From Macrostomum lignano (taxonomy: Eukaryota): DNA of 29,766 nt. The translations under genes were made by a program, and so were the position numbers. The notes below the pieces were generated by a model. The model made no database searches. It had not been told where the DNA came from and saw only the letters and a program-made list of their open reading frames with translations. Positions within the stretch are counted from its first letter, which is position 1; every line of letters begins with the position of its first letter. Positions 859 through 27,626 of this stretch are shown one piece after another. Where the stretch lies: positions 249,835 through 279,600 of the forward strand of contig NIVC01000055.1 of assembly GCA_002269645.1 (NCBI GenBank), read 5' to 3'.

Positions 859-872
859 TCCCTCTTCCTTTC
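859..872 (-). other. Polypurine tract of element B
   Basis: The - strand reads GAAAGGAAGAGGGA abutting the 3' LTR and overlapping the gag-pol stop codon. Confidence 0.9.
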
Positions 873-4596: not shown

Positions 4597-4600
4597 TGTT

Positions 4601-4618: not shown

Positions 4619-4619
4619 T

Positions 4620-4852
4620 TGTTATGTTTTCTTTTACACCGAAGAAAGACGGAAGATAGTGTTTGAGCGTTTGCGAGCTTATGCCACTCGAGAGCATAGC
4701 CGTTTCAGAAACTTAATATATTTCTTTGGCTCGCGAGCCGTCTCAAGCATTTAATACTGTACCGAGTATCTAGAGTTTCAACCCTAGACACTTTAGAAGC
4801 AGAAAGCAAACGAGGCCGAAGTCTATAAGAAGTTAGAAGTCACGTCACAACA
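4620..4852 (-). repeat. 5' LTR of element B
   Basis: 233-bp copy of 626-858, followed on the - strand by the PBS. Confidence 0.97.
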
Positions 4853-6237: not shown

Positions 6238-6395
6238 TGTGACGGTGGACTTTTCTTTGTGCCACCCCATTTTTGATAAGTCTATAAATAGACCTGGTGC
6301 ACGCCAGAGGGCGATACTTGTTTTTTTTTGGTTTTGGCTCAGTTAGGAGCCTTGGACAATCAATATCATTCTTATTTATTTACAAGAATGCAACA
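6238..6395 (+). repeat. 5' LTR of element C (158 bp)
   Basis: Matches 10844-11005 except for a 6-bp gap after TATAAA and T9 versus T7. Confidence 0.95.
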
Positions 6396-7638: not shown

Positions 7639-10600
7639 AACCACTGAGGTTTGTGTGGCTGACTCACTACCCGTAAGCGCGCTGGTTGGACTGGATTTGA
7701 TTAGCCAGCTCAAGTTGGGGGGTGGAGACGCCCCGAGTACAGTGCTTGGAAGAGAGACGCGCGAGAGGGTCCACGGCCAACCCCTCTCAGCCAATGAGAG
7801 AGAATGGGTGGGTGCGCCGCACCGCCTAATGCCCCAGTCAGAGGGGGACGAGAGGCTTTTCGCGGAGGGCATCGTGGCTAGCGGCCTTAACCAGATCGAT
7901 CCGGAGCCGGCTGGCAAAACAAAATCAAGAATAACTAGAGCCCAAGCGCGTAAACAACGGCAAGAGTACAACAAAACGAGACAAGAAACTGCAATGCGCC
8001 CTATAACATTGGATTACGAGGCGGCCCTACAAGACGACAAGGAGTTGCAAGCAGCGGTACAAACCAACGACTTGGTGAAGGAAAGCCGCGGCAGACTGTT
8101 TCGGCATCAAGCAGCTGGAGAGGACCAACTGGTGCTTCCGAAGGCTCTGCGTGCTTCGGCGCTGTCCCAGGCCCATGAGAGTGCATTCGCTGGCCACTTG
8201 GGAACAAGGAAGACTTGTCAACGACTAGAACAGCGATTCTGGTGGCCAACGGTGACAAAGAACGTGAAGGACTTCGTAGCAACGTGCGACAAGTGTCAGA
8301 AGACGGCTCGAGTCCCAGGCAATCACAAGGTACCACTAGTCCAAGTGCCTGGAGTGGAGGAGGCCTTCACCAAAGTTATCATCGATATCAGTGGACCGTA
8401 TACGAGGACTGCGAGTGGTCACCAGTACATCCTGTCGATTATCGATGCGGCTACTCGATTCCCCGAAGGAGTCCCGCTGCGAAAGATCGACGCTGAGTCC
8501 GTAGCGAAGGCATTGGTGGACTGCTTCGTGAGGACCGGATTCCCGAGGGAGATCCAGAGCGATAAGGGTACTAACTTTTCATCAGCACTGCTGCAGGCCC
8601 TGTACCGGTGTACCGGGGTCGAGGGCATCCAGTCGACGCCGTACCATCCGCAAAGCCAGGCGTTGGTGGAGAGGTTCCACGGCACTCTCAAGAATATGTT
8701 GAGGAGACTACCAGCTCGCGAGAAAAAGAAGTGGGACCAGTACCTACCGTATCTGCTGTTCGCCATTCGGGAGGTGCCCAACGAAACAACTGGCTTCTCC
8801 TCATTCGAACTTTTGTATGGACGCACTGTGCGGGGACCGCTAGATCTACTGCGGCAGACCTGGGATGAGCAGCTCTCCGAAGAGAAGAAGGACATCATCT
8901 CGTTCGTGCTGGCCCAGAGAGACCGACTGCGGGCTGGCCAGGAAGCGGCACGGAACAGCGAAGAGCTAGCACGGAAGCGTCAGAAACTCTGGTACGACCG
9001 GCAGTCGCGGGAACGAGAGTTGCAGCCCGGAGATCAGGTGCTGCTGCTGCTGCCATCGTCATCCAAGAAGCTTCACGCTGAATGGCGCGGTCCCTATGAA
9101 GTACTGGAGAGGTGCAGCGATGTGAACTACCGGATCCGGATGGGCCCTGCGACAAACACGTTTCATGTCAACCTGCTCAAGAAGTACAATTCACGAGAGG
9201 CGGTTTTGATGCAGCTTCCAGCGGCAGCTACGAGTGCTCCTGAGTTGTCCGATCATCTGACACCTGCCGAGAGGGATCGTCTCCTGGAGCTGGTGCAGGA
9301 CTTCGCGGGCGTCTTCAGCGAGACCCCGGGGAGGACTGACCTAGTGGAGCGCCGTATCCGGACGACATCTGACCGCGTAGTGCGCATCCGGCCGCGACGG
9401 GAGCCGCAGGCGCATCGGCAGGTGCTCCAAGAGGAGATTCAACGCATGCTGGACCTCGGGGTGATCGAACCATCTGACAGTGACTACTGCTCCCCAGTCT
9501 GTCTGGTGGCCAAGAAGGACGGCTCAGTCCGGTTCACTGTCAACTTCAAGGCGCTGAATGAGCTGGTGGCCTTCGACTCCTATCCAATGAAGAACATCGA
9601 GGACCTACTGGAGCGGGTCGCCAAGGCCAAGTTCATATCTAAGCTAGACTGCTGCAAGGGCTACTGGCAAATTCCACTGTACGAGGATTCAAAGCGATTG
9701 ACGGCTTTCGCGGCCTGCGGCAAGCTGTATCAATTTACTGTGATGCCCATGGGCTTAAACTGCAGCAGCGCGACGTACCAGAGGCTCATGGACAAGCTGT
9801 TCCAAGGGCTGGACAACGCGGACTCCTACATCGATGACATCGCCGTGTTTAGCGCGACATTCGAGCAGCACGTCGAGGACCTGAGGGAAGTATTTGGTCG
9901 CCTTAAGGCTGCCGGTCTAACGGTGCAACCCCAAAAGTGCTACCTGGGCGGCAACTCTGCTGACTACCTGGGTTTCAAGCTCGGCGGAGGCGAGATCGGT
10001 ACAAGCGAGGACCGAGTGCGGACAATCACGGCGCTGGCTCAGCCCCGGACCAAGGCTCAGCTGCGATCTGTGCTCGGAGTGCTCAACCACTACCGTCGGT
10101 TCGTGCCCGATTACTCAGAAAAGGTGGCGGCCCTGACGGACCTCACGAAGAAGTCGGCACCCGATGACCTGACGGCGGCCTGGGGAGAGCAGCAGACGCG
10201 AGCCTTTGAGGCTGTGAAATCTTTGCTGGCGAGAGAGCCGGTGCTGCGCGCGCCGGACTACAGTCGGCAGTTCACCTTGGAGACTGACAGCTCGGAGACT
10301 GGGATCGGCGCGGTGCTAACGCAAGAGTTCGAGGACGGCATCCATCCCGTGCTATTCGTATCTCGGCGGCTGACTTCGGCGGAGCGGAGCTACGCGACGA
10401 TCGAGAAGGAGTGCCTCGCCGTGCGCTGGGCGGTCGAGAAGCTGCGGCACTACCTGCTAGGCCGCCGGTTCGTCATCAAGTCCGACCATAAGCCGCTGCA
10501 GTACCTGCAGATGGACCACGCCAACCCACGACTCCAGCGGTGGGCCTTCTCGTATCTGTCCGGCTATGACTACGAGATCCAGTACCAGCCAGGCGAAAGC

Positions 10601-10678
10601 AACACGGTGGCCGATGGTCTCAGCAGGATCTGGGCTAGTGACCGACCAAGTGATTTAGTGACCGACCAAGTGATTTAG
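7625..10678 (+). CDS. pol: Element C Pol: end of protease, integrase, reverse transcriptase, RNase H
   Basis: The frame is open from 7625 (…RTTEVCVADSLPVSALVGLD, protease C-end). Then HESAFAGHLG...CDKC, IDISGP...SDKG...VERF (DDE), WRGPY, RT KLDCCKGYWQI...YIDD, and RH TDSSETGIGAVL...EKEC...SDHKP...ADGLSR. Confidence 0.93.
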   Translation, partial: RATFRTTEVCVADSLPVSALVGLDLISQLKLGGGDAPSTVLGRETRERVHGQPLSANEREWVGAPHRLMPQSEGDERLFAEGIVASGLNQIDPEPAGKTKSRITRAQARKQRQEYNKTRQETAMRPITLDYEAALQDDKELQAAVQTNDLVKESRGRLFRHQAAGEDQLVLPKALRASALSQAHESAFAGHLGTRKTCQRLEQRFWWPTVTKNVKDFVATCDKCQKTARVPGNHKVPLVQVPGVEEAFTKVIIDISGPYTRTASGHQYILSIIDAATRFPEGVPLRKIDAESVAKALVDCFVRTGFPREIQSDKGTNFSSALLQALYRCTGVEGIQSTPYHPQSQALVERFHGTLKNMLRRLPAREKKKWDQYLPYLLFAIREVPNETTGFSSFELLYGRTVRGPLDLLRQTWDEQLSEEKKDIISFVLAQRDRLRAGQEAARNSEELARKRQKLWYDRQSRERELQPGDQVLLLLPSSSKKLHAEWRGPYEVLERCSDVNYRIRMGPATNTFHVNLLKKYNSREAVLMQLPAAATSAPELSDHLTPAERDRLLELVQDFAGVFSETPGRTDLVERRIRTTSDRVVRIRPRREPQAHRQVLQEEIQRMLDLGVIEPSDSDYCSPVCLVAKKDGSVRFTVNFKALNELVAFDSYPMKNIEDLLERVAKAKFISKLDCCKGYWQIPLYEDSKRLTAFAACGKLYQFTVMPMGLNCSSATYQRLMDKLFQGLDNADSYIDDIAVFSATFEQHVEDLREVFGRLKAAGLTVQPQKCYLGGNSADYLGFKLGGGEIGTSEDRVRTITALAQPRTKAQLRSVLGVLNHYRRFVPDYSEKVAALTDLTKKSAPDDLTAAWGEQQTRAFEAVKSLLAREPVLRAPDYSRQFTLETDSSETGIGAVLTQEFEDGIHPVLFVSRRLTSAERSYATIEKECLAVRWAVEKLRHYLLGRRFVIKSDHKPLQYLQMDHANPRLQRWAFSYLSGYDYEIQYQPGESNTVADGLSRIWASDRPSDLVTDQVI

Positions 10679-10715
10679 TGACTGACCAAGTGATTTAGAG
10701 ACTGACTGAGCGATT
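10636..10715 (+). repeat. Tandem repeat, 4 x 20 bp (TAGTGACCGACCAAGTGATT), spanning the pol stop codon
   Basis: Units start at 10636, 10656, 10676 and 10696 and degenerate toward the 3' end. Confidence 0.92.
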
Positions 10716-10834
10716 TAACTTTTATTAAAGTCGTTAGTGGCCAAGTTTGCATTGTTTTTTTGTAAGACATATCCGAACTTTGCGTGACCCTGCGATTGAT
10801 TTTTGGCTTGCGATTTTTCCGGCTTCGATCTTTT

Positions 10835-10843
10835 GGTGGAGGG
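10835..10843 (+). other. Short polypurine tract of element C
   Basis: GGTGGAGGG immediately before the 3' LTR. Confidence 0.65.
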
Positions 10844-11005
10844 TGTGACGGTGGACTTTTCTTTGTGCCACCCCATTTTTGATAAGTCTATAAATACTCG
10901 TAGACCTGGTGCACGCCAGAGGGCGATACTTGTTTTTTTGGTTTTGGCTCAGTTAGGAGCCTTGGACAATCAATATCATTCTTATTTATTTACAAGAATG
11001 CAACA
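10844..11005 (+). repeat. 3' LTR of element C (162 bp)
   Basis: Copy of 6238-6395, followed by the TSD CACGG. Confidence 0.95.
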
Positions 11006-11725
11006 CACGGCATTCAAACATCGAGAGAGAGGCGCTGGCGATCGTCTGGGCTATGGAGCGTGCGAAACAGTTCCTATTAGGGTCGCGCTTCACACTCAGA
11101 ACGGATCATCCTGCTCATTCTAGTTGACGCTATGTCCGGCTGGCCCGAGGCCGTACGAGTGCAAAACAGGGACGCGGCGACAGTCAAGCGGGTGTTGCAG
11201 GCGGTCTTTGCTAGGAACGGCGTGCCTCATGTGCTGGTCAGCGACAACGCCGCCGAGTTCCACGACGCCAATCTGGTCGCCTGGCTGGAAAGAATCGGCT
11301 GCCGCGCCATCAAGACTCCCCCGCGACACCCTCAATCTAACGGCCTGGCCGAGTGGATGGTCCAGTCTATCAACAGAGCATCTGCGGCGTGGGAACAGTC
11401 CGAAAGCTACGAGTCGTTCTTGTTCACGGTACTCATAAACTACAGGTGTGTGCCGCATGCTGGGCGCCAGCAGAGCCCGTCGCAGCTCATGGGTCGACAA
11501 CTACGCAACCCGATAACCATGCGCACACCAATTGGAGCGAGCCTGTGGTACACGCCTGGAGATCAGCAGCGTCAGGAGCGAGCTGAGTTCATCGTGCAGA
11601 AAGGGACCAACACTGCCCTAATCGCTCGTCAAGGCGGTCGCATCGCCCTGGCGCATGCGGATCAGCTGAGTCGCGTTGTAGAAGACCAGGTCCAGCCAAA
11701 CCGATTCGGCCAGAGCCTACCTATC

Positions 11726-11821
11726 GAACTCGGTCAGGATCCGCCCTGCGGCCTCGGTCAGGACCCACCTGGCGAACTCGGTCAGGACCCGCCTGGCGAA
11801 CTCAGTCGGGACCCGCCCACC
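11726..11821 (+). repeat. Coding tandem repeat, 4 x 24 bp ((E/G)LGQDPP(C/G)), in the element A integrase tail
   Basis: ELGQDPPC GLGQDPPG ELGQDPPG ELSRDPPT. Confidence 0.9.
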
Positions 11822-11902
11822 GAATCCGAACAAGGCCCAAGTCAAACAGCAGCGCGTCGCTACCCAGCTCGGTCAACTCGAGGCGTGCCCCTTATCCGTT
11901 TC

Positions 11903-11914
11903 GAAGGGGGGAGA
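11903..11914 (+). other. Polypurine tract of element A
   Basis: GAAGGGGGGAGA immediately before TG at 11915. Confidence 0.8.
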
Positions 11915-12175
11915 TGAGGCAGCGCTGGATTCTGCCGCTGTACTTATGACTAAGTGACTAGCTGATTGACTATTGAAATATTGACTGTACATCCAGTGTA
12001 CCCACCACCCCGGTTTCGTGCCCCGTGTGCCCCACCACCCCAATGCGTTAATAATTATATATTGAGCATCGTTTGTGTTAGCATCGTTTATGAATAATAT
12101 ATCGAAACTGAGACATCGTTTATTTTACCAAATCATCGTGCTACTCAGTTGAACTCTTAGTTAAACGACGCGACA
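11915..12175 (+). repeat. Putative 3' LTR of element A
   Basis: Starts with TG right after the PPT. The end is placed at ...ACGCGACA (12175) because of the CA terminus and the shift to AT-rich flank. The partner LTR is outside the window, so the end cannot be verified. Confidence 0.55.
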
Positions 12176-12321
12176 TATTCTTTATAGTCCGTATTTATTT
12201 CATTATCTATATTTATGAGCGATAATGAAGTGAAAAATGTATAATTTATCCTTAATAACAATAATTTTAGTTTGTTGCTTGCAATTGGTTTGCTGGCAAT
12301 TTTGTATGGTATAATACTACT

Positions 12322-12463
12322 GGTCAAAAGTCACTGGCGGTCAAAAGTCACTGGCAGGCAAAATTCACTGACGGTCGAAAGTCACTGACGGTCAAAAGTC
12401 ACTGGCAGGCAAAATTCACTGACGGTCGAAAGTCACTGACGGTCAAAAGTCACTGGCGGTCAA
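12322..12463. repeat. 17-bp minisatellite (GGTCAAAAGTCACTGGC), 8 units plus a partial one
   Basis: Three unit variants recur as a 51-bp trimer (12356-12406 = 12407-12457). Confidence 0.92.
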
Positions 12464-13918
12464 CAGCCAAAGTCCTAGACCCCGCATCATTGCACGGATA
12501 CATGCATATTGTCGTTGTCGACTGCCTCAGGTTTGGACGCATGCCTGTCTTGAACTGCCGTGACTGACTGACTACTTCCTGTGAGCTGCAAATCTGTCGC
12601 GGAAAACCAATGCTCTGGCGCCGAAAATGTGAAGCCGCTTTGACAGTCAGTCATTAAAACAAGTTCCTATTGGGTTTTGACTACAAGACTCACACTACCT
12701 CGGCGATATTTTTGCCGTCTTACATTTAATCCCTAGCTCTGTGACATCCGCAGGTGCTAAATACAGTATTTATTATCTGTGGTAAGATCTGCCTGTCCAA
12801 CTTCTTAACTTTCTACTTTCAGTAGTTGATCTTTCCAACACATTAATATTTAGTCGAATTTTCTATCCTACGAGCTAAGATTTTAGCGACGACAAGTAGC
12901 TTTCATTAAATGTTTAAGTATACCCAGATAATCTAGGCGAAACATGGGATATTTAAACTGAAGAAATTGTCCACTCTAAGAGTGAAACGCTATCAAGGAA
13001 TCCGGGACCAGATCAGCGGTAATAAGCTCGTCCGACTCTCGCATCACAGTACCCAAGGTCAGCGGAATTAGTCTGACTGCTTTCGTCCTCACTGACTTGC
13101 TGACTTCCACCCAAAGGCCCCTGCAAACTGACCTACCAAGCCATCAGAAGGCCAATGTTAATGATTTAAAGTCGATTTTTAAGTTGAATAAAGTTTCCCA
13201 AGGCATAAAGTGAACCCTCAGTTAGATGCATATTCTGATTTTTTAAGGACTGCTTTAGAATTTTAGTCATAGCTATATTTCAATATTGAACAAATGGTCG
13301 AAGAGAGAATTTCTATTGTCGATGCGTACCAACAAGAAACTATCAGTTTCAGGACAGCACAGCTTAGTGCTATATGAGTAAACTATATAAAATATTGTTT
13401 TAATCAATAGATGGGGAGTCAAGTAAAATTCCGGAGTTGAAAAAGCGACATAATAGTCCATAGAATATGATCAGATGATACTTATATATTAATCCTTTAT
13501 CCTTTCACGCGTCAATATCGTGTAATGCCAGGTGCAAAATCTAAAAATAGGTGAGAGTACATAAAGGTATTTCGCCAGAAAATTTGATAACAAAGAAGAG
13601 AATGATAAATCAGTTCTAATGGGACAAATTATCAACAGCCAATCAATACAGAAAATATCTTGATGAAGAAAATAATTAGAATATCGGATAGCATTTAGTG
13701 TCCGCTAAAGCACTTAGTTTGTCCTTGTTTGGATTAGCTAATTTGCATTGGTAATTAGCAATCTGTGACCAATCAGAGCTTCAGGCAAGTCCGCGATCAA
13801 ATCCAGCCGGTGGTATTTGTGACTGAAGCGGAACAGAGTTATTCATCATATCTGTGTCTGACTAACTGGTGCCTCCATAGAGATTTGATTAGCAAAAAAG
13901 CTTAGATAGAGAGCTCAC

Positions 13919-14266
13919 CGTCCAGACTTTGAGTAGAATAAACCAGGCGGAATCCTTTCGAAGTAACGCTTGAGTCAGTTCTGAATCGAAGCAGCACAGG
14001 ACCTTGCAGGCTTAGTGAAACTCCAGTGGCATTGCTGTTAACCAGACTCGTTGTCAGCTTGCTATCGTCTACCTCATCAGAGATGCTGAATCTGTCGTAT
14101 ATGAAGATTTTGTCACAGCAGTTCTCAATGTCCACTTCTTCCATCCGGATGTTGACGGGGCCCGTCGCGTCGATCAGCCATTGATAGTCTTTGTTATTAG
14201 CGTATCTTGCGTACATCGACGATCCATAGTTGTTTGGACACTTGATCGTGCCCAAGTCCTCCGAAA
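13919..14266 (-). CDS. CUB exon 23 (type G3)
   Basis: ttttag|TT...G|gtgagc, 348 nt; DLGTIKCPNNYG...DIENCCDKIFIYD...FRTDSSVTSKGFRLVY. Confidence 0.9.
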
Positions 14267-17200
14267 CTAAAAGAAATGCGGTCAACTTGCACTCGATTTG
14301 CATTCTAAAGCCATTGTGTACATCGTAAAGGTTGCGACTACTAATAACAAAACTGATCAAATTAAATTCTACACTATTAATTACCTTATACACCTACGAC
14401 TACCCTTTTACTCTTAAAGTAGCTTACACTTCTTCTCAGAGACGAGGACTACTAGACGAAGTGTTCCTAGTGATCTTTGCTCAGAGAAAAGTACTCGTGT
14501 TACTCTCGCACTCAATTTGCAAGTTTGGGTAAAACGATCACACACAAACGCACACACATACCTACCGAAAAACCATTTTTAGTATAAGACAAATCTTAGA
14601 GATTTAGTATAGGTGGATTTAGTATATTTAGATTAGAGCTGCAGTTGAATAAAATCAAGCGAAGTAAATATTTAACCCTCTCAGTGGTGAATGCAATCGT
14701 AAAAAATTCAACACCTCAAGCTCACCTACAATCGGTCCGCGTCTATAAGAGAACGCAATGCCCCGACCATCAAAGCGTCTGCCAGTTTTAACTCTAATCA
14801 GCAGGGGTCCCGTCAGGACAAAGTCCGTTGACGTGGCATTCGCGTCAGTTAGAATGAACAGCAAGTTTTGCTCATCGGCATCGGCGCTTGCTTGATCAGA
14901 AATTGCAAAGACTTCAATGAAGCTTCCATCTGCTCCGAGATTTGACCAGTTGAATGCCAGCTTGTAAACATATTTGCCCGGAATCAGCCACTTATACTCC
15001 ATCCACTTCTCCATTGTCCTGTTAGCATCGGTTGGGTACTGAATCATTGCAAAACTTTGGGACTGATTGGCGAAAACTGAAACTGTTTGAAAATAGCGGG
15101 GGATCAGAGATGATTGGAAAATGTCAGAGGAAGTGTAAAAAGTGCAATTACCAGTCCTAGGCTCGATGGAATAGGACAAGTCGAAGCCCTGACCGACTAG
15201 CCGTTTATCCGTGCTAAACCGGATCAGCACGGGACCAATCAACTTATACGTTGCCGATGTCGCATTCGCCTGTGTCAGTGTGAACCTCAGCTTGCTGTCT
15301 TCTGGCTCATCGGTTTCTCCATCAGTCATCTCGTACAACTGGATGATGTCATTTCCGTAGCCAATGTCAGCAGATGTGACAGTGATGAGGACGAAATTCC
15401 TTCTGTTGATGGTCCATCTGTACTCCATCTCGTTAGCGTAAGTCGAGCCAGTCTCTTCGGGACAACTAAAGCTACCAGAGTCATTGGTCATGGCGACGTG
15501 CACTGAAAATGTGAACAAATTTTAAGCATCACATTGCCCACATTGTGCAAAGTTGGAACTTAGTGTCAATCAGCAGATTAATATTATCGCAATACAATGT
15601 GCAACTAAAGAATTCTCACCACTTCTGATCTGATAATCGAAAACAACTTGACCGCTCGCCGAAGCAGAGTTGTTGGACGAATATACAACTGCAAGGATGC
15701 CTTTGTGCGTCACGTGATTCGCAAATGGGATCCGTCTCGCACTTTTCTGCATCGCTGGGCTGCTTAGCAGATCCATGTCGCCAGCGAATATCTCTACAGA
15801 AGACGAAGTCGTGATACGGTTAAAGATGAGGTGCGTCAGGAAATCATGAGAACCAGTTGGTGCCACAATCCACTTTGTGCTCGAAGGTCTCGGGAGGACG
15901 GTGGATCCTTCCGCTGGATTGCAGAGTCTCATGCCTCTGCTGCCCCTGATTACCTCGGTTGCTGGTGAAGCCTCTGAAAGATTCAGTTGTGTTTCAGTGC
16001 TAATGATTTGGTGGTCTTTGGAATCAAATGACTGAGACGGAGGTTCTGGCCAGATTTTTCTTGGCGATGCAGTCACAATGATGGTAAACTCATAATCCTT
16101 GAATGAGGGCGTACTTGGATGTAAGAAATCGCTAAGGTGTTAACTTAAAAAGGTGATCTCTGAGTAGGAAGTTTTCTGAATCTTCAACAAAACAAGGAAT
16201 TACCTTCAGCCGAACCATCAGCTGTGTAAGTGAGCTTGAAGTCCCTGCGGCTGCCGTCGCTGTTGGCTGTGAACCGAAGCAGCACAGGACCGGACAGTCG
16301 GAACTCTGACTGGCTGGCACTCGAATCGGACACCACAAATTTCAGATTGTCCTCCGTCTCAGACCTCGTGTTTTGGTACAGGTACACTTTGTCCCCAGCA
16401 GGAAGATTGATGGAGCTGAACCTGATGCGAACCGTGCCGCTTCTGTCGATGATCCATCGATGGTCCAGGTTGCCATCAGTTGCTTCACTTTGCGAGGAGT
16501 AACTGATTTCTCCTTCGGCATCACTCAGAGAAACTGAAATTCGTGGCAGGCGTTTAGGAGGTCAAATCTAAAGGTCAAAGCGGCCTGCTTTGAACTATAA
16601 GATGCAATAAGAGGAAAGGGTGGAACTCTTTAGATGACAAAGACACAGCAGACTTCGGACTCAACTCACCATTCCCAACGGAGTAGGTGAACCTCAAGCC
16701 GAATCTGTCTCCGCTGGCTCCAGTTCTCAGCACCACGGTGACGAATCCGCTCGCTCTCAGGGTCTTCCTCTCGCCAAGTAGGCCAGTCTGACTGAATATG
16801 GGAGACTCGCTGAGCCTGGGCTCAACTCCCGTGTACACACTGACTGTATCGCCATGCGGCTGGCCTCCCTCGGCATCAAAGAGCTGCAGCTCAACCGTCT
16901 GTTGAGGGCTCACAGCGATGGACCAGGCTCTCGATGAGCCCACTGGTCCTCTGGACGGATAAATTGCTTTGCTTCCCTCAATGTTTTTGATGAGTTCAGT
17001 CGGCGTTGGTAGTTCTGGAATAATGCGAGGGTAAATATGAGTCCAGCTCTTATCCGGCCATTAGCAAACAGTGAAAGGTAAGAGTGCTGGCGATACTAAG
17101 AATGTGTTCGCTGGATAAGTTTGTTACACTGAACAGGGCAAATAATCATCGTTTCCTATCGGAGACACTATTATTATCCGCTGTCGTGTATTCTGTGGTG

Positions 17201-20200
17201 ACAGCCCGCCCAGTTTTGTCTATCCGCCCTACATGCTATTGCTGAACAGAAACACGGTCCAAATTATCGTTGTCATTTCTGCGGTTGAAATATCCCATAA
17301 ACTGGATGAATTAGTTTAGAAATAATTTTTCATTGATTTGACCAATAATGGAGCCACTGAGTCACCAACGGCAGTGCGAACCGCATTAAAAACTGAAGTA
17401 CAGTAAAAAGACGCTAAATCGATTTTCCCAGTAATGAGCTGAAGGTAAGGAACACACAGTACGAGTATAATTGTCGCATCGCTAGTGCTTTTGCTCTCAA
17501 GAAGTCGGATTTTTCTAGCGCAAAGTTTTTTCGACCGAATTATTCTATAGCGAAAGCCCCTTCAGAGCCGTGCCCTCTAGCGATTCGGAAAATATTCGGT
17601 CTTTACAAGCGTGCACCTCATTTCTAAAAAAATCGAGTGTGCCGTTCACTTCAGTTGTCCATGGCAAACCGACCTTAAGCATATCAAGCGTCTGTACACA
17701 TTGAATGCTCTGTAATGAAGGCGTGTTTATACTTATTAAACGTGTTTGAGCAGTTGAACAATCATGTATCTGGGACTCAAAAGTTTATTTACAATATTTC
17801 CTATAAATGATGAATAAATGGAAAATGATCATATTTTACCTTCGCTCCCGCTCTGATACGACAGCTTGAAGATGTTGCCACTGACCCGCTTTGTGGTGAC
17901 TTGAACCAGCACGGGACCTCTGAGCCTGAACTCTACAGAGGTCGCATTCGTCATTGACCTGTGCTCAGAGACGAAGGCCAGCCTGTCCTCGCTGGGGTCA
18001 GCAGTCATCTCGTACAGTCTGACAATATCTGCGTGAGACAGCTTCAGCGAGACCCAGCCTTGACGATCAATGAGCCACCTGTAGTCAGTCTCGAGGTCAT
18101 ACTTCATCTCTTCTTCCGCAGGAAGCTGCTCGCCTTCAGAGCAGACAACATCGGCTTTTTCGTCTGTCAGGTTTCTCGATTTTACTAAAACGGTTTCATT
18201 CAGAGCGTACTGAGGAATGTTACGAATATTAAAGATGTAAATAAGTAGTTTGACGGAAACAGTAACATCACTTTCTGTTTGTTTTGTTTTGATTTGTTTT
18301 GTCACTCTCTGTAAATTTTTACTGACTAAATATTTAATTAACAACAACTTACTTCTGCTGTCAAGAGCCGAGTAAGATAAGTTGAAGCCCGCCCGATGAT
18401 ACTAATGTCAGTAACGAATTGGATCAGCACCGGACCAACGACATGAGCTGTTTTGTTATCACTTGTCACGGTAAACCCTTTCTTAGAATCCTGAGCATCT
18501 TCAAAAAGCTGAGTCTTCTCATAGAAACTAATTTTATCGATTCCCGTTTCAACGTCATACGAGTCAACCTTCATCTCGAGCAGGCTCAGATCGCCGATCC
18601 ACCAGGCGTACGTTTTGTTGTTTAAATAGTAACCGCTGCCGAAGTTCTCTGGGCATTGAAGCTTTCCTGAGTCGACTGAAAAGGCATCGAAAATTGAATA
18701 GACGTCAGATGCTTTGCATTGGCTCAAATGTAGACCCACCTTGCGTGCTAAAATTTAACTTAAATAACAATAATTAACATTACCAATTACTATAAACAGT
18801 AATGAGAGTATCTGGAACTCAGGAATTCGAAACTCACCCACGTATCGATCGAGATAATAATCGATTATAAAGCCTCTTGACGCGTTCTGATGATCAGTTT
18901 TAAATCGGATCAACGCAGGTCCAACCAGAACATACTTTATTGAGCTCCAGCTGTCTCCAGTCAGTGTGTATTTTCTGTTCTCAGGCTGCGGTTCCGCCGA
19001 AGAGTCAGTCTTTTCATAGAATTCAAGCACATCGTTTGCGTCCTGAATGCCCATGCTTCTAACTGTCAAAAAGACAACTCTGCTCGATGGAATGTACCAA
19101 CGATAGTCCATCTGATGCTCGTAGGCTTCATACTCTTCATTCGGACACCTGATGCTGCCCGAATCGTTTAGCAGATTACGGGAAACTAAAAATGTAAAAG
19201 AAGTGGCTTGGTGGAGAAACACCCACGTGCATAGAAAACCAAGCGTCAGAATACGCAAAGCTGCAAAATTTTACACCGTGAACTCAAAATTTTAAACTAA
19301 GGAAATGCATAAAACACCAAAATGGCTCACGAGTTCGTTCCTCAACAGTATAAGACAAACTGAAGCCTTTGCCAACAAGAGACTCATCCGTGCTAAACCG
19401 GATCAGCACGGGACCAATCAACTTATACGTTGCCGATGTCGCATTCGCCTGCGTCAGTGTGAACCTCAGCTTGCTGTCTTCTGGCTCATCGGTTTCTCCA
19501 TCAGTCATCTCGTACAACTGGATGATGTCATTTCCGTAGCCAATGTCAGCAGATGTGACAGTGATGAGGACGAAATTCCTTCTGTTGATGGTCCATCTGT
19601 ACTCCATCTCGTTAGCGTAAGTCAGCTGGATTCCTCTGGACAGCGAAGGCTTCCAGAGTCCTCGCTAAGGTAGCGATGCACTGAAAGGAAGTAAGGTTTA
19701 TGGTCTCACCATGGTCTCACGGTGCACTGAAAAGGGCAAGAGCTCACCGTTTCTGATTTGATAATCGAATTGAAAGACCAAATCAGTACAGCGGTCAATA
19801 ATACTAGACTCTTCTATCTGTTCCCAGTAAACGGAAACAGGTCCACCTTTACTGATGTGCTGTGTCAGTCCACTGAACTGAGCCTCAAAGCTATCATTGG
19901 AGAGTCTCTGAGTAAGCCAATTTCCAGCATAAACGAACCAACCGCAGGTATACGAATCGTAAAATTCAAAAAATTCTTCTTCTTTGAAAAGAATATGAAC
20001 GGTGAATTCATGACTCGGCTTTGGCGCAATGACCCAAACAATTTTTGCTCTTTCAGTCCTGTCGGTGGTATCAAATTTAGGGAAGCTCCATCTGGTACCT
20101 CGACTGCTCTTCACTACTTCAACCGCATTTTCCACTGCAAGAAGGTTTGATTGGGATAAAAATGGTTCACGATTACGTACATTTAGTTTTAGTTTTAATA

Positions 20201-23200
20201 TGCACGCGACTTCTCAAAGGCTTACACTTCAAATCGGATCTGACTGATATGCCAGCCGGAAGCTTCTCGGGCTGCCGTCTCCCGCTGCCGTGATGCGAAT
20301 TAAAACAGATCCTCTCAGCCAGAACTCCGACTCGCTGGCACTCGCATCTGCTAGCACAAATCTTCTCTTGAGCTCATCCTTGGACGTGGTGTTTTCGTAC
20401 AGATGAAGCTTGTCTCCGTCCTGGAGATTGAGGGAACGAACATTGATGCGAACAGAACCGCTGCTTTGAATGATCCAGCTGTAATCCATGTCCAAGTCGA
20501 AAGCTGAACTATCCGACGAGTTTTGAGGGAACCTGATTTCTCCCGATCGTCCTGACAGTAAAACTTTAAGTGCAAAGAAGAATAGATCATGCAATGCAGA
20601 CTAAAGTAGTATGACTATATTTTTGCATTAGTTATTGTTAAAAATGAAAACAAAGTATGTATAATTACCGTTTTTCACTGAATACTGGAGGCCGAACCCT
20701 CGCTTTGCTTCATTGGCGTCGGTTCTCAGCACCACGGTGACGAATCCGCTCGCTCTCAGGGTCTTCCTCTCGCCAAGTAGGCCAGTCTGACTGAATATGG
20801 GAGACTCGCTGAGCCTGGGCTCAACTCCCGTGTACACACTGACTGTATCGCCATGCGGCTGGCCTCCCTCGGCATCAAAGAGCTGCAGCTCCACAGTCTG
20901 TTGAGGGCTCACAGCGATGGACCAGGCTCTCGCAGAACTCGGTCCGCAGCTGCTTCGACCATCAGGCATGAGGCAGCCCTGCAGTCCGTCCAAGTTTCGC
21001 AAAAGCGCAGTTGTCATCGATAAATCTGCAGGGAAGTTATTTAGAAAAGTCACTGTTCCTATCTAGAGATACAAATTGATTGATTGTCGCTTTCAGATTG
21101 CCTCACTTTGTCGGTTGACACTGAACGTCGCCCCGAACGGCACTATCGTCGGCCTCATCCTTCGCGATTGAAGCCGAACAACTGCTGGGCCTCTTAGTTT
21201 GAACTCGGTAGACATCAAATCGCTGAGCGGTGCATCAGTCAGGGAGAACACGCGACTCCTTGGAGTTGGGATCTTCGTCCTCTCGTGCAGCTCTAGCTTG
21301 TCGCAACCGCTTAGCAATTGAGCCTGCACGAATCGAATGCTGACCGCCGCTGTTGTGTCGACGACCCACCTTCGGTCAATCTCCATGTCGTAGCCATCAG
21401 TATCGCAGACATCCAGCCCAATGGCATTCCTCAAGTTGCTTGACTGCACTCCAATTTCACCTTGAGTCTGTGTCAGAACACTGGATATTACTAAAATATT
21501 ATAGAAACCGTGCATTATTTCAGACAATAGAAAATACCAAAGACGCGTAAGATGGGATCAAAAACATCAAAGTGACATCAGCATACCGAATTGGTCTCCT
21601 ATTTCATAGGAAAAGTTTAGAGCTCTTTGCATTGGTCGACCAGCTGTAACTAACTTGATCATACCAGGTCCGATCAGTCTGTATGTAGATGAAGTAGCAT
21701 TCCCCTTCGTCAGTGTAATGTTTGCAGCTGACGAGTCCTTTCTCCATAACTGGATTTTGTCGCAGCAGTCTGAGATTTCCACCCCACTGAATTTGACTGC
21801 CACAGCTGCCTTTCGGTCGATTTTCCAAATGTAGTTTACCTGGGCTTTGGTGAATGATGGCGGGTTCACCCACCGAACTTCACCCGAGTCTCCTGACAGA
21901 CCTGAAAGTTCGAATTCAACTTTTAACTTGTCTTATGAAGCAGCTTTCATAAATATAAATATAATGAACTACTGTTTGCTTGAATACATAAATTTTTTAT
22001 TTTTGAAACGAGCCAGGTAAGAAAATGCAGAAATCTATCATGAACTCCTAAATTCTAATTAAAATCAAATTACGACGTATAATCAAACTTTGATAAAAAA
22101 ATACTATACTAATTATTTCTTACTTGAGGTTTCTTCTAGATAGTATGTCATGCGAAACCCGTCACGATTGCCACTGCCGTCAGTTTTGAACCTGATGAGC
22201 ACTGGTCCCTTCAAGGTGTATGTTTCACCGTATCCGCTCCCTGTAAGCCTGTACTTTCGTTTATTTTCGTCAGGCTTCTCATGCACCGGTGAGTTTTCGT
22301 ACAAGCCGATCCAATCATAATTACTCTCAGTATCATAGCGAATGAACGTAAGCACCACCGTTTTCTGCTCATAGATGCTCCACTCGTAGTCAACGTTGTT
22401 ATCGTACTTAGAGTATCCATAGTTCTCCGGATATGAAAGGTTTCCACTGTCCACTGAAAGGATTTAAGGAAAATATAATAACGAGTAAAAAGCGGTTGTT
22501 TAGTATGTGCAGACAAAATATTCCCAGAAAGACTGAAAGCTTTTAGGCAATTATGTGCTAACAAACTTCATGGAAACATTGCGAATTGATGCTTACAGAT
22601 TTTGCTGCCAGCCTGATAGTAGAGCTGGAAGCCGGGAGCAGTAACTTGAGAGTTCGTTCTGAACCGGATGAGCACTGGTCCGACCAGCGTAATATTCGAC
22701 GCTTCTGCAGCCTCCTGAGTCACATTGAGCTTCCATCTCCGCCGATCTGGCTCTCCACTCTCATCGACCTTCTCATAGAACTCGATGGTGTCTTGAATGT
22801 CAATAAAGTCGAACCGAATGACAATGATGCTTTTTCGATTGATTGTCCATCGATAGTCCATGAACTTCTCATAGTTCACCAGTGCGGTCTCGGGGCAGAA
22901 AATATTGCCGGAGTCATAATTTAATATTCGGTGTACTGCAAACGTTAATGAGAACATGTCTACACAGTAAGTTTTATTCGAGCTATAATCATCTCTCAGT
23001 TAGTAGCTTAAAGAGAATTCTATCTAAAGAACTGGAATTCTTGATATCCACTAGAATCCACTTGTTTACTACGAGCCAAAATTCCAGTTCACAACCATGC
23101 AACTGGCTGTGCACTGTTTATACTTTCTTCGAAAAAACATGCATGTGAAACCGTAAGTTTTATCTTCAAACAACATGGTCGCATTTCGATAGGATAAGAA

Positions 23201-26200
23201 TCGGCAATTTGATAAGACCCTAAAGTCACAACTCAATGAAATGAACATACTGAGATAAGAATCGGCAATTCGATAAGACCCTAAAGTCACAACTCAATGA
23301 AATGAACATACTGAGATAAGAATCGGCAATTCGATAAGACCCTAAAGTCACAACTCAATGAAATGAACATGCTGAGATAAGAATCGACAATTCAATAAGA
23401 CCCTAAAGTCACAACTCAATGAAATGAACATACTGAGATAAGAATCGGCAATTTGATGAGACCCTAAAGTCACAACTCAATGAAATGAACATACTGAGAT
23501 AAGAATCGGCAATTCGATAAGACCCTAAAGTCACAACTCAATGAAATGAACATACTGAGATAAGAATCGGCAATTCGATAAGACCCTAAAGTCACAACTC
23601 AATGAAATGAACATACTGAGATAAGAATCGGCAATTCGATAAGACCCTAAAGTCACAACTCAATGAAATGAACATGCTGAGATAAGAATCGACAATTCAA
23701 TAAGACCCTAAAGTCACAACTCAATGAAATGAACATACTGAGATAAGAATCGGCAATTTGATGAGACCCTAAAGTCACAACTCAATGAAATGAACATACT
23801 GAGATAAGAATCGGCAATTTGATGAGACCCTAAAGTCACAACTCAATGAAATGAACATGCTGAGATAAGAATCGGCAATTTGATGAGACCCTAAAGTCAC
23901 AACTCAATGAAATGAACATGCTGAGATAAGAATCGGCAATTTGATGAGACCCAAAAGATATAACTCAATGAATTGATATTCTGACTTACAAGTCCGCTCT
24001 TTAGTAGTGTAGGACAGATTGAATCCCTGACCAACAAAATCTTTGCCCGGGACGAAACGGACCATGACTGGACCCGGAATTCGGTAGGCCCCCCGTGCTG
24101 TAGCATTCGACTGAGTCAGAACGAACTTCAGCTTGGCCTGCTGTGGCTCGTCGGTCAAATAGGCTTCCTCGTACAGCTCGATGACGCCACTCCCAATGTC
24201 CACTGTTGAGACCTCGATAACAACTAAGTTAAGCCGGTTGATTGTCCATCTGTACTCCATTTCGCTCTCTAAGGTCTCACCAGACACTTGAGGACAGCGA
24301 ATTGAACCCGAGTCTTTTACGAGAGGCTCTTGAGCTGAAAAGAAGAAAGAAAAAATGCTCTTAGCTGCTTGCAAGTGAAATAAAATTTGACTAAAATCTG
24401 AAAGCGCTTTGAGTATTTTAATAAGCATCATAGCATTTTGCAATAAAATGACTACTCATAGAAGACAAAGACTGTATCATTAGATAAAAATGCCAACATT
24501 CATTACCGTTCATTAACTGAAACTTGAACTCTCGCTGAGATCTAATGAAGCTCAAAGCCCGTGGTCGATAAACAACAGTGAGAGGACCGTTGTACCTGAC
24601 GATGCTCGCATACGGGATCCGCTGGAGTGGCTCAGAATTCGACAAGCTGGTGACGGCTCCCTCATAGAGACTTATTGCGATTCCTGACTCCACTGGCAGC
24701 TCTGGCAGGTACAGCAGAACTGAGCGCCCGGGCTTGGCTGCAATGACCCATGCAGTAGGCGACCCGTTCTCGGGGATAAGAGCTCTCGAGCCTCGATAGC
24801 TGTCAATCAGCTCAACAGCCATGTCGGTATCTGCAGTGTCACACAAGCAGTCGCGTCAATCGCATATCTATGCTTGTCACCTAAGAGATAACAATTCAAT
24901 TTTTAGGAAATTATCACTCACTGCCCGACTGGTCAGCTGCATACGACAGTCGAAAGTCTCTCGACTGACCGTCTCCGCTGGCAACTAATCGAATCATGAC
25001 GGGACCGGACAGACGGAACTCCGACTCTCTGGAGCTCGCATTGGTCACCAGGAATCTCAGAGCCGCTTCGTCCTCAGACGTTGTGTTCTCGTAGATGTAC
25101 AGCTTGCCATTGGGACGGAGGCTTATGGAGGCGAATCGGATGCTGAGTCTGATGTCTCTGCTAATGAACCAGCGGTAGTCAATGTCGCTGTTGAACTCCG
25201 CTGAGCCCTTCGGGAACCCGATCTGTCCACTCGGTTCCGCTTGAGGAGCTTAATGAAGGTGAGAAAATATTACCGATTTAGTTTTAGTTACCAACAGAGC
25301 TGCTGAAATTTGCGTAGTCAGTGCCTTGACTGTGTATATTCTGCTTCACTTTTACCTGACTCATGCATTTGGCTGTTATGCCCTACATCACATTATATGC
25401 TAAGCTTTTCGTTGCACTTCGATTATCATAGTTCAAAACGATTCTTACTGCTGTATACAGTGTAGGAGAGACCGAGCCCACGTCGTGATCGTCTGGCTTC
25501 TGTCGTCAGCACCACAGTGACGAATCCGTTCGCTCTCACGGTCTTCCTCTCACCAAGTAGTCCAGTCTGACTGAATATCGGGGACTCGCTCAGCACAGGA
25601 CGAACCCCATTATATACGCCTATCGTATCCGTATGAAGCTGACTTCCCTCGGCATCAAATAGCTCGAGCTCAACGATTTGCTGGGGATTCACGGCGATAG
25701 ACCATGCTCTTGTTGTGACATTGCTCACAGCGATGTCGGCACCTTTACTTTGGTAACAGATTCTCTCTCCTTTTTCATTTTTGATTATTTCAGTAGGCAT
25801 TTCCAGATCTGAAGCGACAATGGAATCATCATTGTAATAGTCTAAGAACGGAGTCACCCTAAACTTTAGTGATTCGTTTTAAGTCTAGAATTACCTCCGT
25901 CGCTGCTTCTGTAGGACAGCCTAAAAACTCGTCCCCTTGTCTGTGTCTTCTTAACCAGCACCAGCACCGGGCCGAACAGTCGGAAACGCGACGTCCCTTC
26001 TCTCTCTTTCGGTCCGTTGGTAAAGACGGGCTCCTTGTCGGGGGTTGTCGTCATCTGGTAGATCCGAGCGAGGTCAGAGAAGGACAGCTTGAGGTCGATT
26101 CTCCCGGGTCGGTCAATGAGCCATCTGTATTCAATGCTAACATTGCTGTCTCGATCCGAGACTTCCAGCTCTGAGCAGATTGCGTCGTCGCTGGGCTCGG

Positions 26201-27559
26201 TGAAAGTTCTGAATCGAACTAAAATTGCGAAAATAGGGTAGTTTTTCAACTATCAGCTCATTGCTTTGATATTACTTATACTATTTACCACTTATACTAA
26301 TACGTATACTTATCCTACTTATCCAAGCTTTTTTTCAGTATAGGAAGCCTTCATTAAATACATGCAGACAGTAGCCAACGTTAACAACGTTACTCACCCA
26401 AAGATTCCTCAAGCGTGTAGGTTAGGTTGAATCCCCTCTTTGCGACGCTACTATCTGTCTTAAATCGAATTAGCACAGGAGCAATGAGCACAAGCGCTTG
26501 GGATGTAGCGTTATTCGGATTGATTCGGAATTTCGGATTCCTGCGATACGATACTTCGAGGTCGTCCGTACCCTCGAAAATCTCCAAGCGGTCATATGGG
26601 GTCTCCAGTTCCGCAAAGTGGAATCGGATGGCTACAGCCTTCGGCCCGCGAATGGTCCAGTTGTAGACTTTGAGTTCTCATAGACGGCGCCGGGCTGCCC
26701 AAAGTTTTCCGGACATTGAATTGTGCCAGTGTCGGCCGGGACTGAAACTGTGGATCAGGGACCACATCAGCACTTGGATGAACATAGCTGAGCTGACAGA
26801 ACTGCTTTAATTGCAAAACAGTCTAGAACTTTGATGGGTCTGTAAACTTTGATTGACTCATCTTGACTGTCAGTCAACACTTCAACTGCTAAAAATTTAC
26901 TGCTGGTCCTAACCTATTATTGAAGTAAATCATCGGCAGAGAAACGTCAGGAACCAAATTCTGACTGTTCTTGATGATGGCAACACAATACATATATTCC
27001 CTTGATAGCTTCTGATTATAGATTTCTTAACACTGATTTAAACTTTTTAACATTCATTTCGATGCGGGCTCGTGTTTGAATGTAACCAATATTACGTGAG
27101 TTCAAATCATCATTGTTGTCTGGACTTTAAGGCCCGGACTGATTATACTGAATATTACCGATTTTTCGCGGCAGACACAATAACTTGCTGTCTTGAACGC
27201 AGACAAATCTGTAGTACATCCACTTGTACTACAGATAGCTGATGTTGAATAAAAGTGTCAAATACAGTCATCAATGATCTTAAAAATGACTGTGCAATGT
27301 TCATCCGAACTCTTGACTAAAAATCGTGGAACAAATGAAGAGCTAAAAAAATCGAGGGCAATAGAACATCCACAATCACATTGCGGTCAGTCAGTCAGTC
27401 GCAAATCTGACTTGATCAGAGGCTGCAGTTCTCAGTCCATAGCATTAGGATGTTGAAATATTGGCGTCAACAATCAGACTCACCCGCTACAGCAGAGCCG
27501 GTTTCAAATGCCAAGAGGCTGCCTAGAAAGGCGGTGAGTAGCAGTTGCAGCAAATCCAT
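13919..27559 (-). CDS. Multi-exon gene for a large secreted multi-CUB-domain glycoprotein (signal exon plus 23 CUB-like exons, ~2,680 aa; terminal exon unresolved)
   Basis: Every exon is bounded by AG and GT in phase 1. Each repeats the CUB scaffold SG.I..P...Y....Y.W.I...D.L.(I/L)YE...GPVLIRF.TD....GF.L.Y. Nineteen CUB exons have lengths divisible by 3 and four are 1 nt short. No EGF repeats are seen, so it is not called cubilin. Confidence 0.88.
14726..15082 (-). CDS. CUB exon 22 (type F3)
   Basis: aaacag|TT...G|gtgagc, 357 nt (alternative in-frame AG at 15076); MEYKWLI...LTGPLLIRVKT. Confidence 0.85.
15152..15502 (-). CDS. CUB exon 21 (type E3)
   Basis: tttcag|TG...G|gtaatt, 351 nt; DSGSFSCPEE...MEYRWTINRR...GPVLIRFSTD. 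Confidence 0.9.
15620..15973 (-). CDS. CUB-like exon 20 (type D3, divergent)
   Basis: ctttcag|AG...G|gtgaga, 354 nt; EVIRGSRG...KWIVAP...FDYQIRSG, paralogous to exons 13 and 5. Confidence 0.72.
16204..16533 (-). CDS. CUB exon 19 (type C3)
   Basis: tttcag|TT...G|gtaatt, 330 nt; EGEISY...DHRWII...SEFRLSGPVLLRF. Confidence 0.88.
16670..17014 (-). CDS. CUB exon 18 (type B3)
   Basis: ttccag|AA...G|gtgagt, 345 nt; RAWSIAV...LSESPIFSQTGLLGERKTLRASGFVTVVL. Confidence 0.88.
17840..18184 (-). CDS. CUB exon 17 (type A3)
   Basis: ttttag|TA...G|gtaaaa, 345 nt; DYRWLIDRQG...FRLRGPVLVQV. Confidence 0.85.
18353..18675 (-). CDS. CUB exon 16 (type G2), 1-nt deletion near 18388-18390
   Basis: tttcag|TC...A|gtaagt, 323 nt. 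Adding one G gives GRGFNLSYSALDSR and restores phase 1. Confidence 0.82.
18838..19185 (-). CDS. CUB exon 15 (type F2)
   Basis: ttttag|TT...G|gtgagt, 348 nt; DSGSIRCP...MDYRWYI...FKTDHQNASRGF. Confidence 0.9.
19331..19680 (-). CDS. CUB exon 14 (type E2), 1-nt deletion at 19623/19624
   Basis: tttcag|TG...C|gtgagc, 350 nt. DSGSLRCPEESS then shifts frame into TYANEMEYRWTI. Confidence 0.82.
19748..20134 (-). CDS. CUB-like exon 13 (type D2, divergent)
   Basis: ttgcag|TG...G|gtgagc, 387 nt; EVVKSSRG...VWVIAPKP...FDYQIRNG. Confidence 0.8.
20226..20563 (-). CDS. CUB exon 12 (type C2), 1 nt short, or carrying an in-frame TGA at 20229-20231
   Basis: ttaaag|TT start; 338 nt to the gtaagc donor; SGEIRFP...DYSWII...SEFWLRGSVLIRI. 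Confidence 0.75.
20669..21025 (-). CDS. CUB exon 11 (type B2)
   Basis: ctgcag|AT...G|gtaatt, 357 nt; core almost identical to exon 18. Confidence 0.88.
21107..21490 (-). CDS. CUB exon 10 (type A2)
   Basis: ttttag|TA...A|gtgagg, 384 nt; EIDRRWVV...GCDKLELHE...FKLRGPAVVRL. Confidence 0.8.
21587..21901 (-). CDS. CUB exon 9 (type X2)
   Basis: tttcag|GT...G|gtatgc, 315 nt; DSGEV...NYIWKI...EISDCCDKIQLW. Confidence 0.88.
22124..22453 (-). CDS. CUB exon 8 (type G1)
   Basis: tttcag|TG...A|gtaaga, 330 nt; DSGNLSYPENYG...YDNNVDYEWSI...DTESNYDWIGLY...FKTDGSGNRDGF. Confidence 0.92.
22597..22935 (-). CDS. CUB exon 7 (type F1)
   Basis: ttgcag|TA...T|gtaagc, 339 nt; DSGNIFCP...MDYRWTI...GPVLIRFRT. Confidence 0.9.
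23193..23983. repeat. Intronic 61-bp minisatellite, 12 full units plus one degenerate unit
   Basis: Unit GATAAGAATCGGCAATT(T/C)GAT(A/G)AGACCCTAAAGTCACAACTCAATGAAATGAACAT(A/G)CTGA, starting exactly every 61 nt from 23193 to 23925. No spacers. Confidence 0.97.
23990..24334 (-). CDS. CUB exon 6 (type E1)
   Basis: ttttcag|CT...T|gtaagt, 345 nt; DSGSIRCP...MEYRWTINR...FVGQGFNLSY. Confidence 0.9.
24507..24830 (-). CDS. CUB-like exon 5 (type D1, divergent)
   Basis: ctgcag|AT...G|gtaatg, 324 nt; ELIDSYRGSR...AWVIAAKP...YNGPLTVVY. Confidence 0.72.
24922..25248 (-). CDS. CUB exon 4 (type C1), absent from the ORF track
   Basis: cattaag|CT...A|gtgagt, 327 nt, open throughout; SGQIGFP...DIDYRWFI...KLYIYENTTS...SEFRLSGPVMIRL...DFRLSY. 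Confidence 0.88.
25449..25841 (-). CDS. CUB exon 3 (type B1)
   Basis: ttcttag|AC...A|gtaaga, 393 nt; RAWSIAV...LSESPIFSQTGLLGERKT. Confidence 0.82.
25895..26218 (-). CDS. CUB exon 2 (type A1)
   Basis: ttttag|TT...G|gtaatt, 324 nt; EYRWLIDRPG...FRLFGPVLVLV. Confidence 0.85.
26398..26747 (-). CDS. CUB exon 1 (type X1), 1-nt deletion near 26669-26671
   Basis: ccacag|TT...G|gtgagt, 350 nt. DTGTIQCPENFG...YENSK then shifts frame into VYNWTI...ETPYDRLEIFEG...FKTDSSVAKRGF. Confidence 0.82.
27484..27559 (-). CDS. First coding exon of the CUB gene: signal peptide
   Basis: ATG in gcaaATGG context; MDLLQLLLTAFLGSLLAFETGSAVA; 76 nt (3n+1) ending at a GTGAGT donor in phase 1, matching the CUB exons. 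Too short for the ORF track. Confidence 0.85.
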
Positions 27560-27618
27560 TTGCTGGTTGCTGCACAAGAATTTCTTAGGGCTCCGGTGCT
27601 GCAGCTTGACCAGCATAA

Positions 27619-27626
27619 TATTTATA
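27619..27626 (-). promoter_or_regulatory. Candidate TATA box of the CUB gene
   Basis: TATAAATT on the - strand, about 60 nt upstream of the signal-peptide ATG. Confidence 0.55.

Follow-up and report, generated by a model that had tools for sequence, protein, structure and literature searches.

Near-identity between inner segments of two CUB exons in one Macrostomum lignano gene, probably produced by recurrent gene conversion

Short near-identical tracts in otherwise diverged paralogues have been described for linked gene pairs in C. elegans, fog-2/ftr-1 and col-12/col-13, where interlocus conversion is aided by proximity despite moderate divergence, leaves variants shared between the paralogues, and, as is usual for close tandem paralogues, is confined to exons, with the introns diverged past the homology threshold (PMC3966223). 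Within single proteins, concerted evolution of metazoan domain repeats, such as those of Drosophila C tripleX, homogenizes units by recombination, evidence for which was found in 0.6–5% of the repeat families tested and was described as rare (PMC5100051). A further point of comparison is cubilin and other extracellular multi-CUB proteins, built as long tandem CUB arrays with one domain per symmetric exon. Homogenization of spidroin repeats is said to be a comparable case within a protein. We analyzed the terminal 29.8 kb of contig NIVC01000055.1 from the flatworm Macrostomum lignano (Mlig_3_7 assembly GCA_002269645.1), hereafter the window, in which the minus-strand gene Mlig033186g3 codes for a signal peptide followed by 23 CUB-fold domains, each in its own phase 1-1 exon. 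The array is laid out approximately as F G (H) B A C D E three times over plus two terminal domains; since the exon classes recur three times in the same order, it goes back to an ancient threefold duplication in which the module comprised 7–8 exons. Two A-class exons, A2 and A3, share a near-identical internal tract, and we attribute this, with a probability of roughly 0.8, to gene conversion of the non-allelic (ectopic, intragenic) kind, acting between paralogous exons of a single gene that lie 4 kb apart. The tract is a new example of a known process and reveals no new mechanism.

The tract has the features of the C. elegans pairs, with differences of setting and extent: the paralogues here are exons, that is, domain repeats of a single gene and not separate genes, and the tract occupies only the inner 60% of its exon against a background divergence that is far higher, with synonymous substitutions per synonymous site (dS) saturated. 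The domain-repeat cases are similar in that units of one protein have been homogenized by recombination, but they involve whole units, usually with high turnover of unit number, whereas here homogenization is partial, affects two of about eight domain classes in two of the three modules, and comes with no sign of unit gain or loss across five copies of the gene. Unlike cubilin, Mlig033186g3 has 23 rather than 27 CUB domains, passes directly from signal peptide to CUB exons, and has no EGF modules that we could see; lacking N-terminal EGF repeats and with only 22–23% identity, it falls outside the cubilins. The exons and tracts on which the argument rests are the following.

16723–16933, minus strand: homogenized tract, module 3 copy, within CUB exon A3 (X18)
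20722–20932, minus strand: homogenized tract, module 2 copy, within CUB exon A2 (X11)
16670–17014, minus strand: exon A3 (X18), 345 nt, phase 1-1, one CUB-fold domain
20669–21025, minus strand: exon A2 (X11), 357 nt, phase 1-1, one CUB-fold domain
25449–25808, minus strand: exon A1 (X3), the module 1 paralogue

An earlier reading of this DNA from its letters alone (the sequence-only reading) had reported 209 of 211 positions identical between 16723–16933 and 20722–20932 with two synonymous differences, and alignment bore this out. Exons 11 and 18 of that reading are numbered among the CUB exons, the upstream signal-peptide exon (~27484–27559) being left uncounted. The longest perfect run is 170 nt, and the mismatches at 16893/20892 and 16896/20895 are both synonymous in the minus-strand frame (Thr ACG/ACT and Val GTT/GTG). 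Repeat finding and sensitive self-blastn recovered nearly the same pair (16715–16933 and 20714–20932, 97.7% over 219 nt), and in a direct alignment of 16623–17033 with 20622–21032 the near-identity begins and ends abruptly. Matching sites between A2 and A3 number 207/210 in the tract and 60/132 (45%) in the exon flanks (Fisher p = 5e-33), the flanks of A3 beyond the tract being 44–47% identical to A2. Even at a background identity of 89%, a perfect run of 170 nt has a probability of ~1e-9 per start position, and by a GENECONV-type comparison the run of identity is longer than flank divergence predicts. Synonymous divergence, which the sequence-only reading had proposed to compare inside and outside the tract, is far from equal in the two: dS is ~0.06 in the tract (3 of 52.7 synonymous sites), where nonsynonymous substitutions per nonsynonymous site (dN) are 0 and third codon positions are identical in 67 of 70 codons, compared with dS of at least 1.8 and dN of 0.59–0.86 in the flanks. 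Between modules the other exon classes have dS from 1.3 to infinity (saturated or nearly so) with 25–50% amino-acid identity; C2 and C3, for example, are 60% identical in nucleotides with dS 1.46, and D2 and D3 40% identical with dS saturated. No intron similarity between modules was detected by blastn at word size 7.

The third A-class exon allows the grouping of sites to be compared along the exon. Of the tract sites shared by just two of the three A exons, 45 group A2 with A3, none A1 with A2 and one A1 with A3; in that order, the 5′ flank has 15, 10 and 20 such sites and the 3′ flank 6, 11 and 8. The tract is thus incongruent with its flanks, which have no preferred pairing. The tract edges lie 50–90 nt inside the exon, as the sequence-only reading had it when calling the tract exon-internal, and no intron has been lost. 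Both edges abut indels, a gap of 12–15 nt at the 5′ edge and, at the 3′ edge, a 3-nt insertion present in two of the other gene copies (L004 and L005). On the predicted fold the tract covers residues ~31–101 of 118, six of nine strands, and its dN relative to A1 is 0.125 compared with 0.56–1.18 at the exon edges, the fast-evolving parts of the domain being the two N-terminal strands and the last strand. The tract is the slowly evolving core of the domain and not one surface, which argues against a single binding surface.

Module 1 carries a trace of what appears, from the local rise in identity, to be an older exchange nested within the same tract. Its copy (25494–25712) is 78% identical to the A tract over 219 nt, and within it a sub-tract at 25501–25590, encoding LSESPIFSQTGLLGERKT...VVL, is 89% identical over 90 nt, close to the figure of about 90% over some 75 bp given earlier from the letters. 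For this sub-tract dS is 0.38, the remainder of the tract being saturated relative to module 1, and the sliding proportion of synonymous differences (pS) between A1 and A2 is 0.13–0.33 in codons 70–95 and at least 0.7 elsewhere. The E-class exons of modules 2 and 3 contain a second tract of the same kind.

15207–15444, minus strand: E tract, module 3 copy, within exon E3 (X21, 15152–15502)
19386–19623, minus strand: E tract, module 2 copy, within exon E2 (X14, 19331–19680)

The E2 and E3 tracts are identical at 237 of 238 positions and internal to the exon, with 20/59 and 24/55 differing sites in the two flanks; self-blastn found the pair as 15171–15508 and 19350–19686. The offset between copies is 3999 for the A tract and 4179 for the E tract, and the C and D exons lying between are not homogenized, so the view that these are separate events stands. 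The sequence-only reading had proposed looking for variants shared between paralogous tracts, and three sites in the E tract behave as such when gene copies stand in for a population: the variant at position 148 is exclusive to the window copy, yet is present there in E2 as well as E3, and at positions 172 and 206 the two exons vary together from one gene copy to the next. A C-class pair has a weaker anomaly. Exons C1 (24922–25239) and C3 (16204–16533) match by blastn at 73.5% over 151 nt, and their synonymous difference falls to 0.35–0.46 in codons 45–75 from 0.7–0.85 at the ends; the dip may be the trace of an old C-class exchange.

The assembly contains four further whole-gene copies, 92–99% identical to the window (L001, L002, L004 and L005; L003, NIVC01000055.1:264063-279600, is the window's own locus, 100% identical to window 14229–29766). 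In all four the A tract has the boundaries that it has in the window, and the two fixed differences (tract positions 36 and 39) are present as well. Since the tract is common to five gene copies, the main event predates the copy split, at which time A2 and A3 differed at ~2 positions as reconstructed from the distance matrix. At present they differ, of 209 positions, at 2 in the window and at 3, 11, 11 and 12 in the others. The A2 tract is invariant in protein sequence across all five copies, and in three of the other copies A3 differs from A2 inside the tract by 3–5 amino acids. The UniRef proteins P0001 and P0162, which do not match the Mlig_3_7 models and which we take to come from the earlier ML2 assembly, have the same A2 and A3 cores. 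The only difference in the tract between the A3 of the window and that of its closest copy, L001, is at position 23, where the window A3 has the A2 state and every other A3 and all A1 have A. By a rough estimate this pattern has a chance of ~0.005–0.01, and it looks like a short later patch from A2 to A3 bounded by the surviving differences at 36 and 39. The suggestion made from the letters that the process was repeated holds up, with the nested module 1 sub-tract, the main event in five copies and later copy-specific patches.

We also considered a second, full-length conversion in the lineage of the window and L001, where tract changes since the copy split number 0–1 compared with 9 in the other clade (binomial p ~0.004–0.02); it was set aside because a faster rate for A3 in that clade would give an inseparable pattern. 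Survival of differences 36 and 39 in every copy argues against later conversion of the whole tract.

The proposed course of events would be as follows. Repair of a break or lesion in one A-class exon would have used the A-class exon of the neighboring module as template, and heteroduplex repair would then have copied ~210 nt. The similarity remaining between the exons would have set the reach of the exchange, which would have run through the slowly evolving core and halted at indels and heavy divergence, leaving both ends inside the exon and the introns untouched. In order, there would have been an older exchange that also involved module 1 and left the 90-nt sub-tract, then the main A2/A3 event shortly before the five gene copies diverged, and later a short patch that gave the window's A3 the A2 state, with the E-class exons of the same two modules behaving likewise and independently. 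We infer the repair mechanism itself, a transfer to A3 from A2, the likely donor in view of its invariant protein sequence and of the window A3 state at position 23, and tract limits set by homology and not by selection. Because introns and exon edges are unalignable, conversion at the DNA level is confined to the regions that are still similar. The sequence-only reading had offered a choice between selection to keep binding surfaces identical and an RNA- or cDNA-templated route to explain the restriction to exons; neither is needed, and DNA-level conversion is enough.

Several observations weigh against gene conversion as the source of the A tract. First, if module 1 is a guide, the exons were probably just 78–89% similar before conversion and shared perfect matches no longer than ~17–20 nt, which would be low for classical homologous recombination unless the exons had been kept similar continuously. 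Secondly, A2 and A3 have drifted to 11–12 differences in three copies and share no new variants there, so A-class conversion is infrequent; variants shared between A2 and A3 within one copy amount to the single site at position 23. Thirdly, there is no consistent GC-biased signature, since GC content at third codon positions (GC3) is 0.66–0.67 in the A2/A3 tract and 0.54 in A1, within the range of 0.39–0.69 for other exons; in the E tract GC3 is 0.63, compared with 0.66 in E1. Finally, every genomic copy comes from one assembly of one inbred line.

The low prior similarity would be accommodated by replicative template switching, in which a single microhomology-mediated switch of the fork stalling and template switching or microhomology-mediated break-induced replication type (FoSTeS/MMBIR) copied ~210 nt from one exon into the other. 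The 77–78% identity of A1 with the A2/A3 tract and the short perfect matches are compatible with such a switch, as is the sharp drop in identity, from 100% to ~45%, beside indels at both ends. No junction insertions or scars are visible, however, and the pattern is recurrent and graded, with a nested sub-tract, a window patch of 1–35 nt and shared E variants, which fits continuing homology-dependent exchange. We consider a one-off switch unlikely, a minor alternative for the initial event. Gene conversion in the A and E classes of modules 2 and 3 might, alternatively, have been joined by a second force, with conversions preferentially retained by selection for two identical CUB cores in one secreted protein, for example to bind one ligand bivalently, or with a transcript as the donor. 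This is quite unlikely on present evidence; if true, the gene would be a natural system in which to study how domain-repeat exchange is controlled, in a flatworm tractable by transgenesis.

Selection or a hidden functional element as the primary cause, with nucleotide constraint or identical ligand-binding domains maintained and no exchange at all, has in its favor that, by the dN values above, constraint within the domain is strongest in the tract and that the A2 core is unchanged in protein in 5/5 copies. The identity at third positions goes beyond what protein-level selection can produce, and A1 differs at 22% of all sites across the same region. The tract also diverges from one gene copy to another at an ordinary pace, A3 having accumulated 6–8 differences in 209 nt with its few amino-acid changes, so identical cores are not obligatory. 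The span of six strands is likewise not that of a single binding surface. As for an element in the nucleic acid, no Rfam family matched anywhere in the window and the RNA fold of the tract is no more stable than that of shuffled sequence (z = -0.24), and an embedded structured RNA was rejected on these grounds. We regard selection without exchange as very unlikely.

Repair from RNA or complementary DNA (cDNA), with a spliced transcript of the same gene as donor, would explain why both tracts are entirely exonic, and the annotation of Mlig033186g3 presumably derives from transcript clusters (Mlig_3_7 annotation). The tract ends, however, are 50–90 nt inside the exon and not at or across splice junctions, introns are retained, and the C and D exons, which lie between A and E in the messenger RNA, are unconverted. 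A DNA template yields the same restriction to exons where introns are unalignable, and nothing in the data needs a spliced template. With no positive support, the cDNA route is at most a minor consideration and its likelihood is slight. The least likely reading is an assembly or polishing artefact, which the sequence-only reading had named as a possible refutation. In the neopolyploid genome of M. lignano, whose hidden polyploidy makes it hard to assemble (PMC10733133, PMC10468722), reads of one paralogous exon could have been used to correct the other, and the window does lie at a contig end and has four 1-nt deletions unique among the gene copies. The tract nevertheless recurs, with unchanged boundaries and both fixed differences, in four separately assembled copies that have substitutions of their own, and its cores recur in P0001 and P0162; it is also far shorter than a long read and has unique flanks.

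Gene conversion thus remains the preferred account, and several consequences follow from the pattern. The locus is an instance of partial concerted evolution within a single gene, exchange being limited to the inner core of an exon on a saturated background, and it has a datable nested order, with module 1 first, the main event before the copy split and copy-specific patches last. Trees built from the domains of this array would go astray for the A and E classes, and the two modules cannot be told apart with short reads, RNA interference constructs or in situ probes drawn from these 210–240 nt. Paralogous exchange also operates here beside the recent genome duplication of the species.

Exchange may extend beyond the modules of one copy. 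Most window exons are nearest to L001 (98–100%), and exon X19 (16204–16533) is 99.1% identical to L002, L004 and L005 and 97.6% identical to L001; similarity between gene copies is mosaic in this way, which suggests exchange between the copies as well, whether homeologues or haplotypes. Copies also differ in structure. In L002 (13912–24104 of the locus, NIVC01000397.1; gene copy g1) an insert of ~10 kb lies between the A3 and C3 exons and stretches the gene to 25 kb.

The window copy itself has four frame breaks, 1-nt deletions at 26672 (X1), ~20237 (X12), 19624 (X14) and 18395 (X16), that are absent from the other four gene copies. The deletion in X12 leaves a TGA two codons ahead of the donor site. 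Short homopolymers (AAA, GG and GGG) contain three of these deletions, and the fourth coincides with the 5′ edge of the E tract. The annotated model, PAA92384.1, is truncated to 1191 aa because of these deletions. Their cause is either an erroneous consensus near the end of the contig or the decay of a redundant gene copy; we did not adopt the pseudogene reading, since the breaks are unique to the contig end and mostly in homopolymers and consensus error is at least as likely. Exon X2 has an in-frame 3-nt deletion at 26147 (SDRD-SNV, compared with SDRDTSNV elsewhere), again in the window copy only among the five.

The gene model on which the exon classes rest was obtained as follows.

13919–26747, minus strand: array of 23 CUB-like exons, X1–X23, phase 1-1, ~306–387 nt each
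27484–27559, minus strand: coding part of the first exon, with a signal-peptide-like N-terminus, MDLLQLLLTAFLGSLLAFETGSAVA, matching the N-terminus of M. lignano proteins P0001, P0151 and P0155

A hidden Markov model (HMM) derived from the exons has 23 matches in the window, on the minus strand only. Length is divisible by three in the 19 exons with an unbroken frame, splice sites are clean AG/GT with phase 1-1 throughout (in A3, for example, ..ttccag|AA and TG|gtgagt), and introns are short, 65–825 nt, with 36% GC. The three M. lignano proteins named above confirm the model; the signal peptide was assigned by inspection and not with a predictor. Assignment to the CUB fold drew on profiles and structure, since most of the domains are too diverged for the Pfam CUB model singly. 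Of ten exons searched individually with Pfam CUB (PF00431), one was above threshold (X8, 28.4 bits compared with 21.4), the A-class exons singly falling below it. A profile of 21 domain exons matched CUB domains of PCPE-1 and cubilin at E = 3e-8 to 2e-7. The AlphaFold2 (AF2) model of the A2 exon product, for which the multiple sequence alignment consisted solely of domains of the same gene, has nine strands with pLDDT 81.4 and a predicted template-modeling score (pTM) of 0.77. Its best Foldseek matches in the PDB are nearly all CUB domains, including those of neuropilin-2, PCPE-1, C1r, TSG-6 and spermadhesins, at query-normalized TM of 0.6–0.68. By inspection the A-class exons are mostly without cysteines.

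In an exhaustive HMMER search, 805 aa spliced from seven consecutive exons gave two very strong matches. The nearest relatives beyond M. lignano are Trichoplax and fish cubilin, at 22–23% identity and E = 1e-25 to 1e-27, and no orthologue outside M. lignano was found in the collections searched, which do not include the M. cliftonense and M. hystrix genomes (PMC10468722). Literature searches by gene identifier and for CUB with gene conversion returned nothing specific.

Repeats occur within and beyond the gene. The intron between exons E1 and F2 contains a tandem array at 23071–24102 with a 61-bp unit and ~17 units, and the blast pattern suggests that unit number differs between gene copies. 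Two long terminal repeat (LTR) retrotransposons lie elsewhere in the window.

634–4852, minus strand: LTR retrotransposon 1, with an identical LTR pair at 634–858 and 4627–4852
6236–11005, plus strand: LTR retrotransposon 2, with an identical LTR pair at 6236–6395 and 10842–11005

The first has its domains in the order protease, reverse transcriptase, RNase H, integrase. The second has a SCAN-like gag and an integrase upstream of the reverse transcriptase, an order that we take to be Gmr1-like, and it was apparently inserted in an older element of which a protease fragment (4862–5629) and an integrase fragment (11132–11917) remain. Downstream of the gene are further tandem arrays at 12305–12491, with a 17-bp unit resembling GGTCAAAAGTCACTGGC, and at 10636–10715, with a 20-bp unit.

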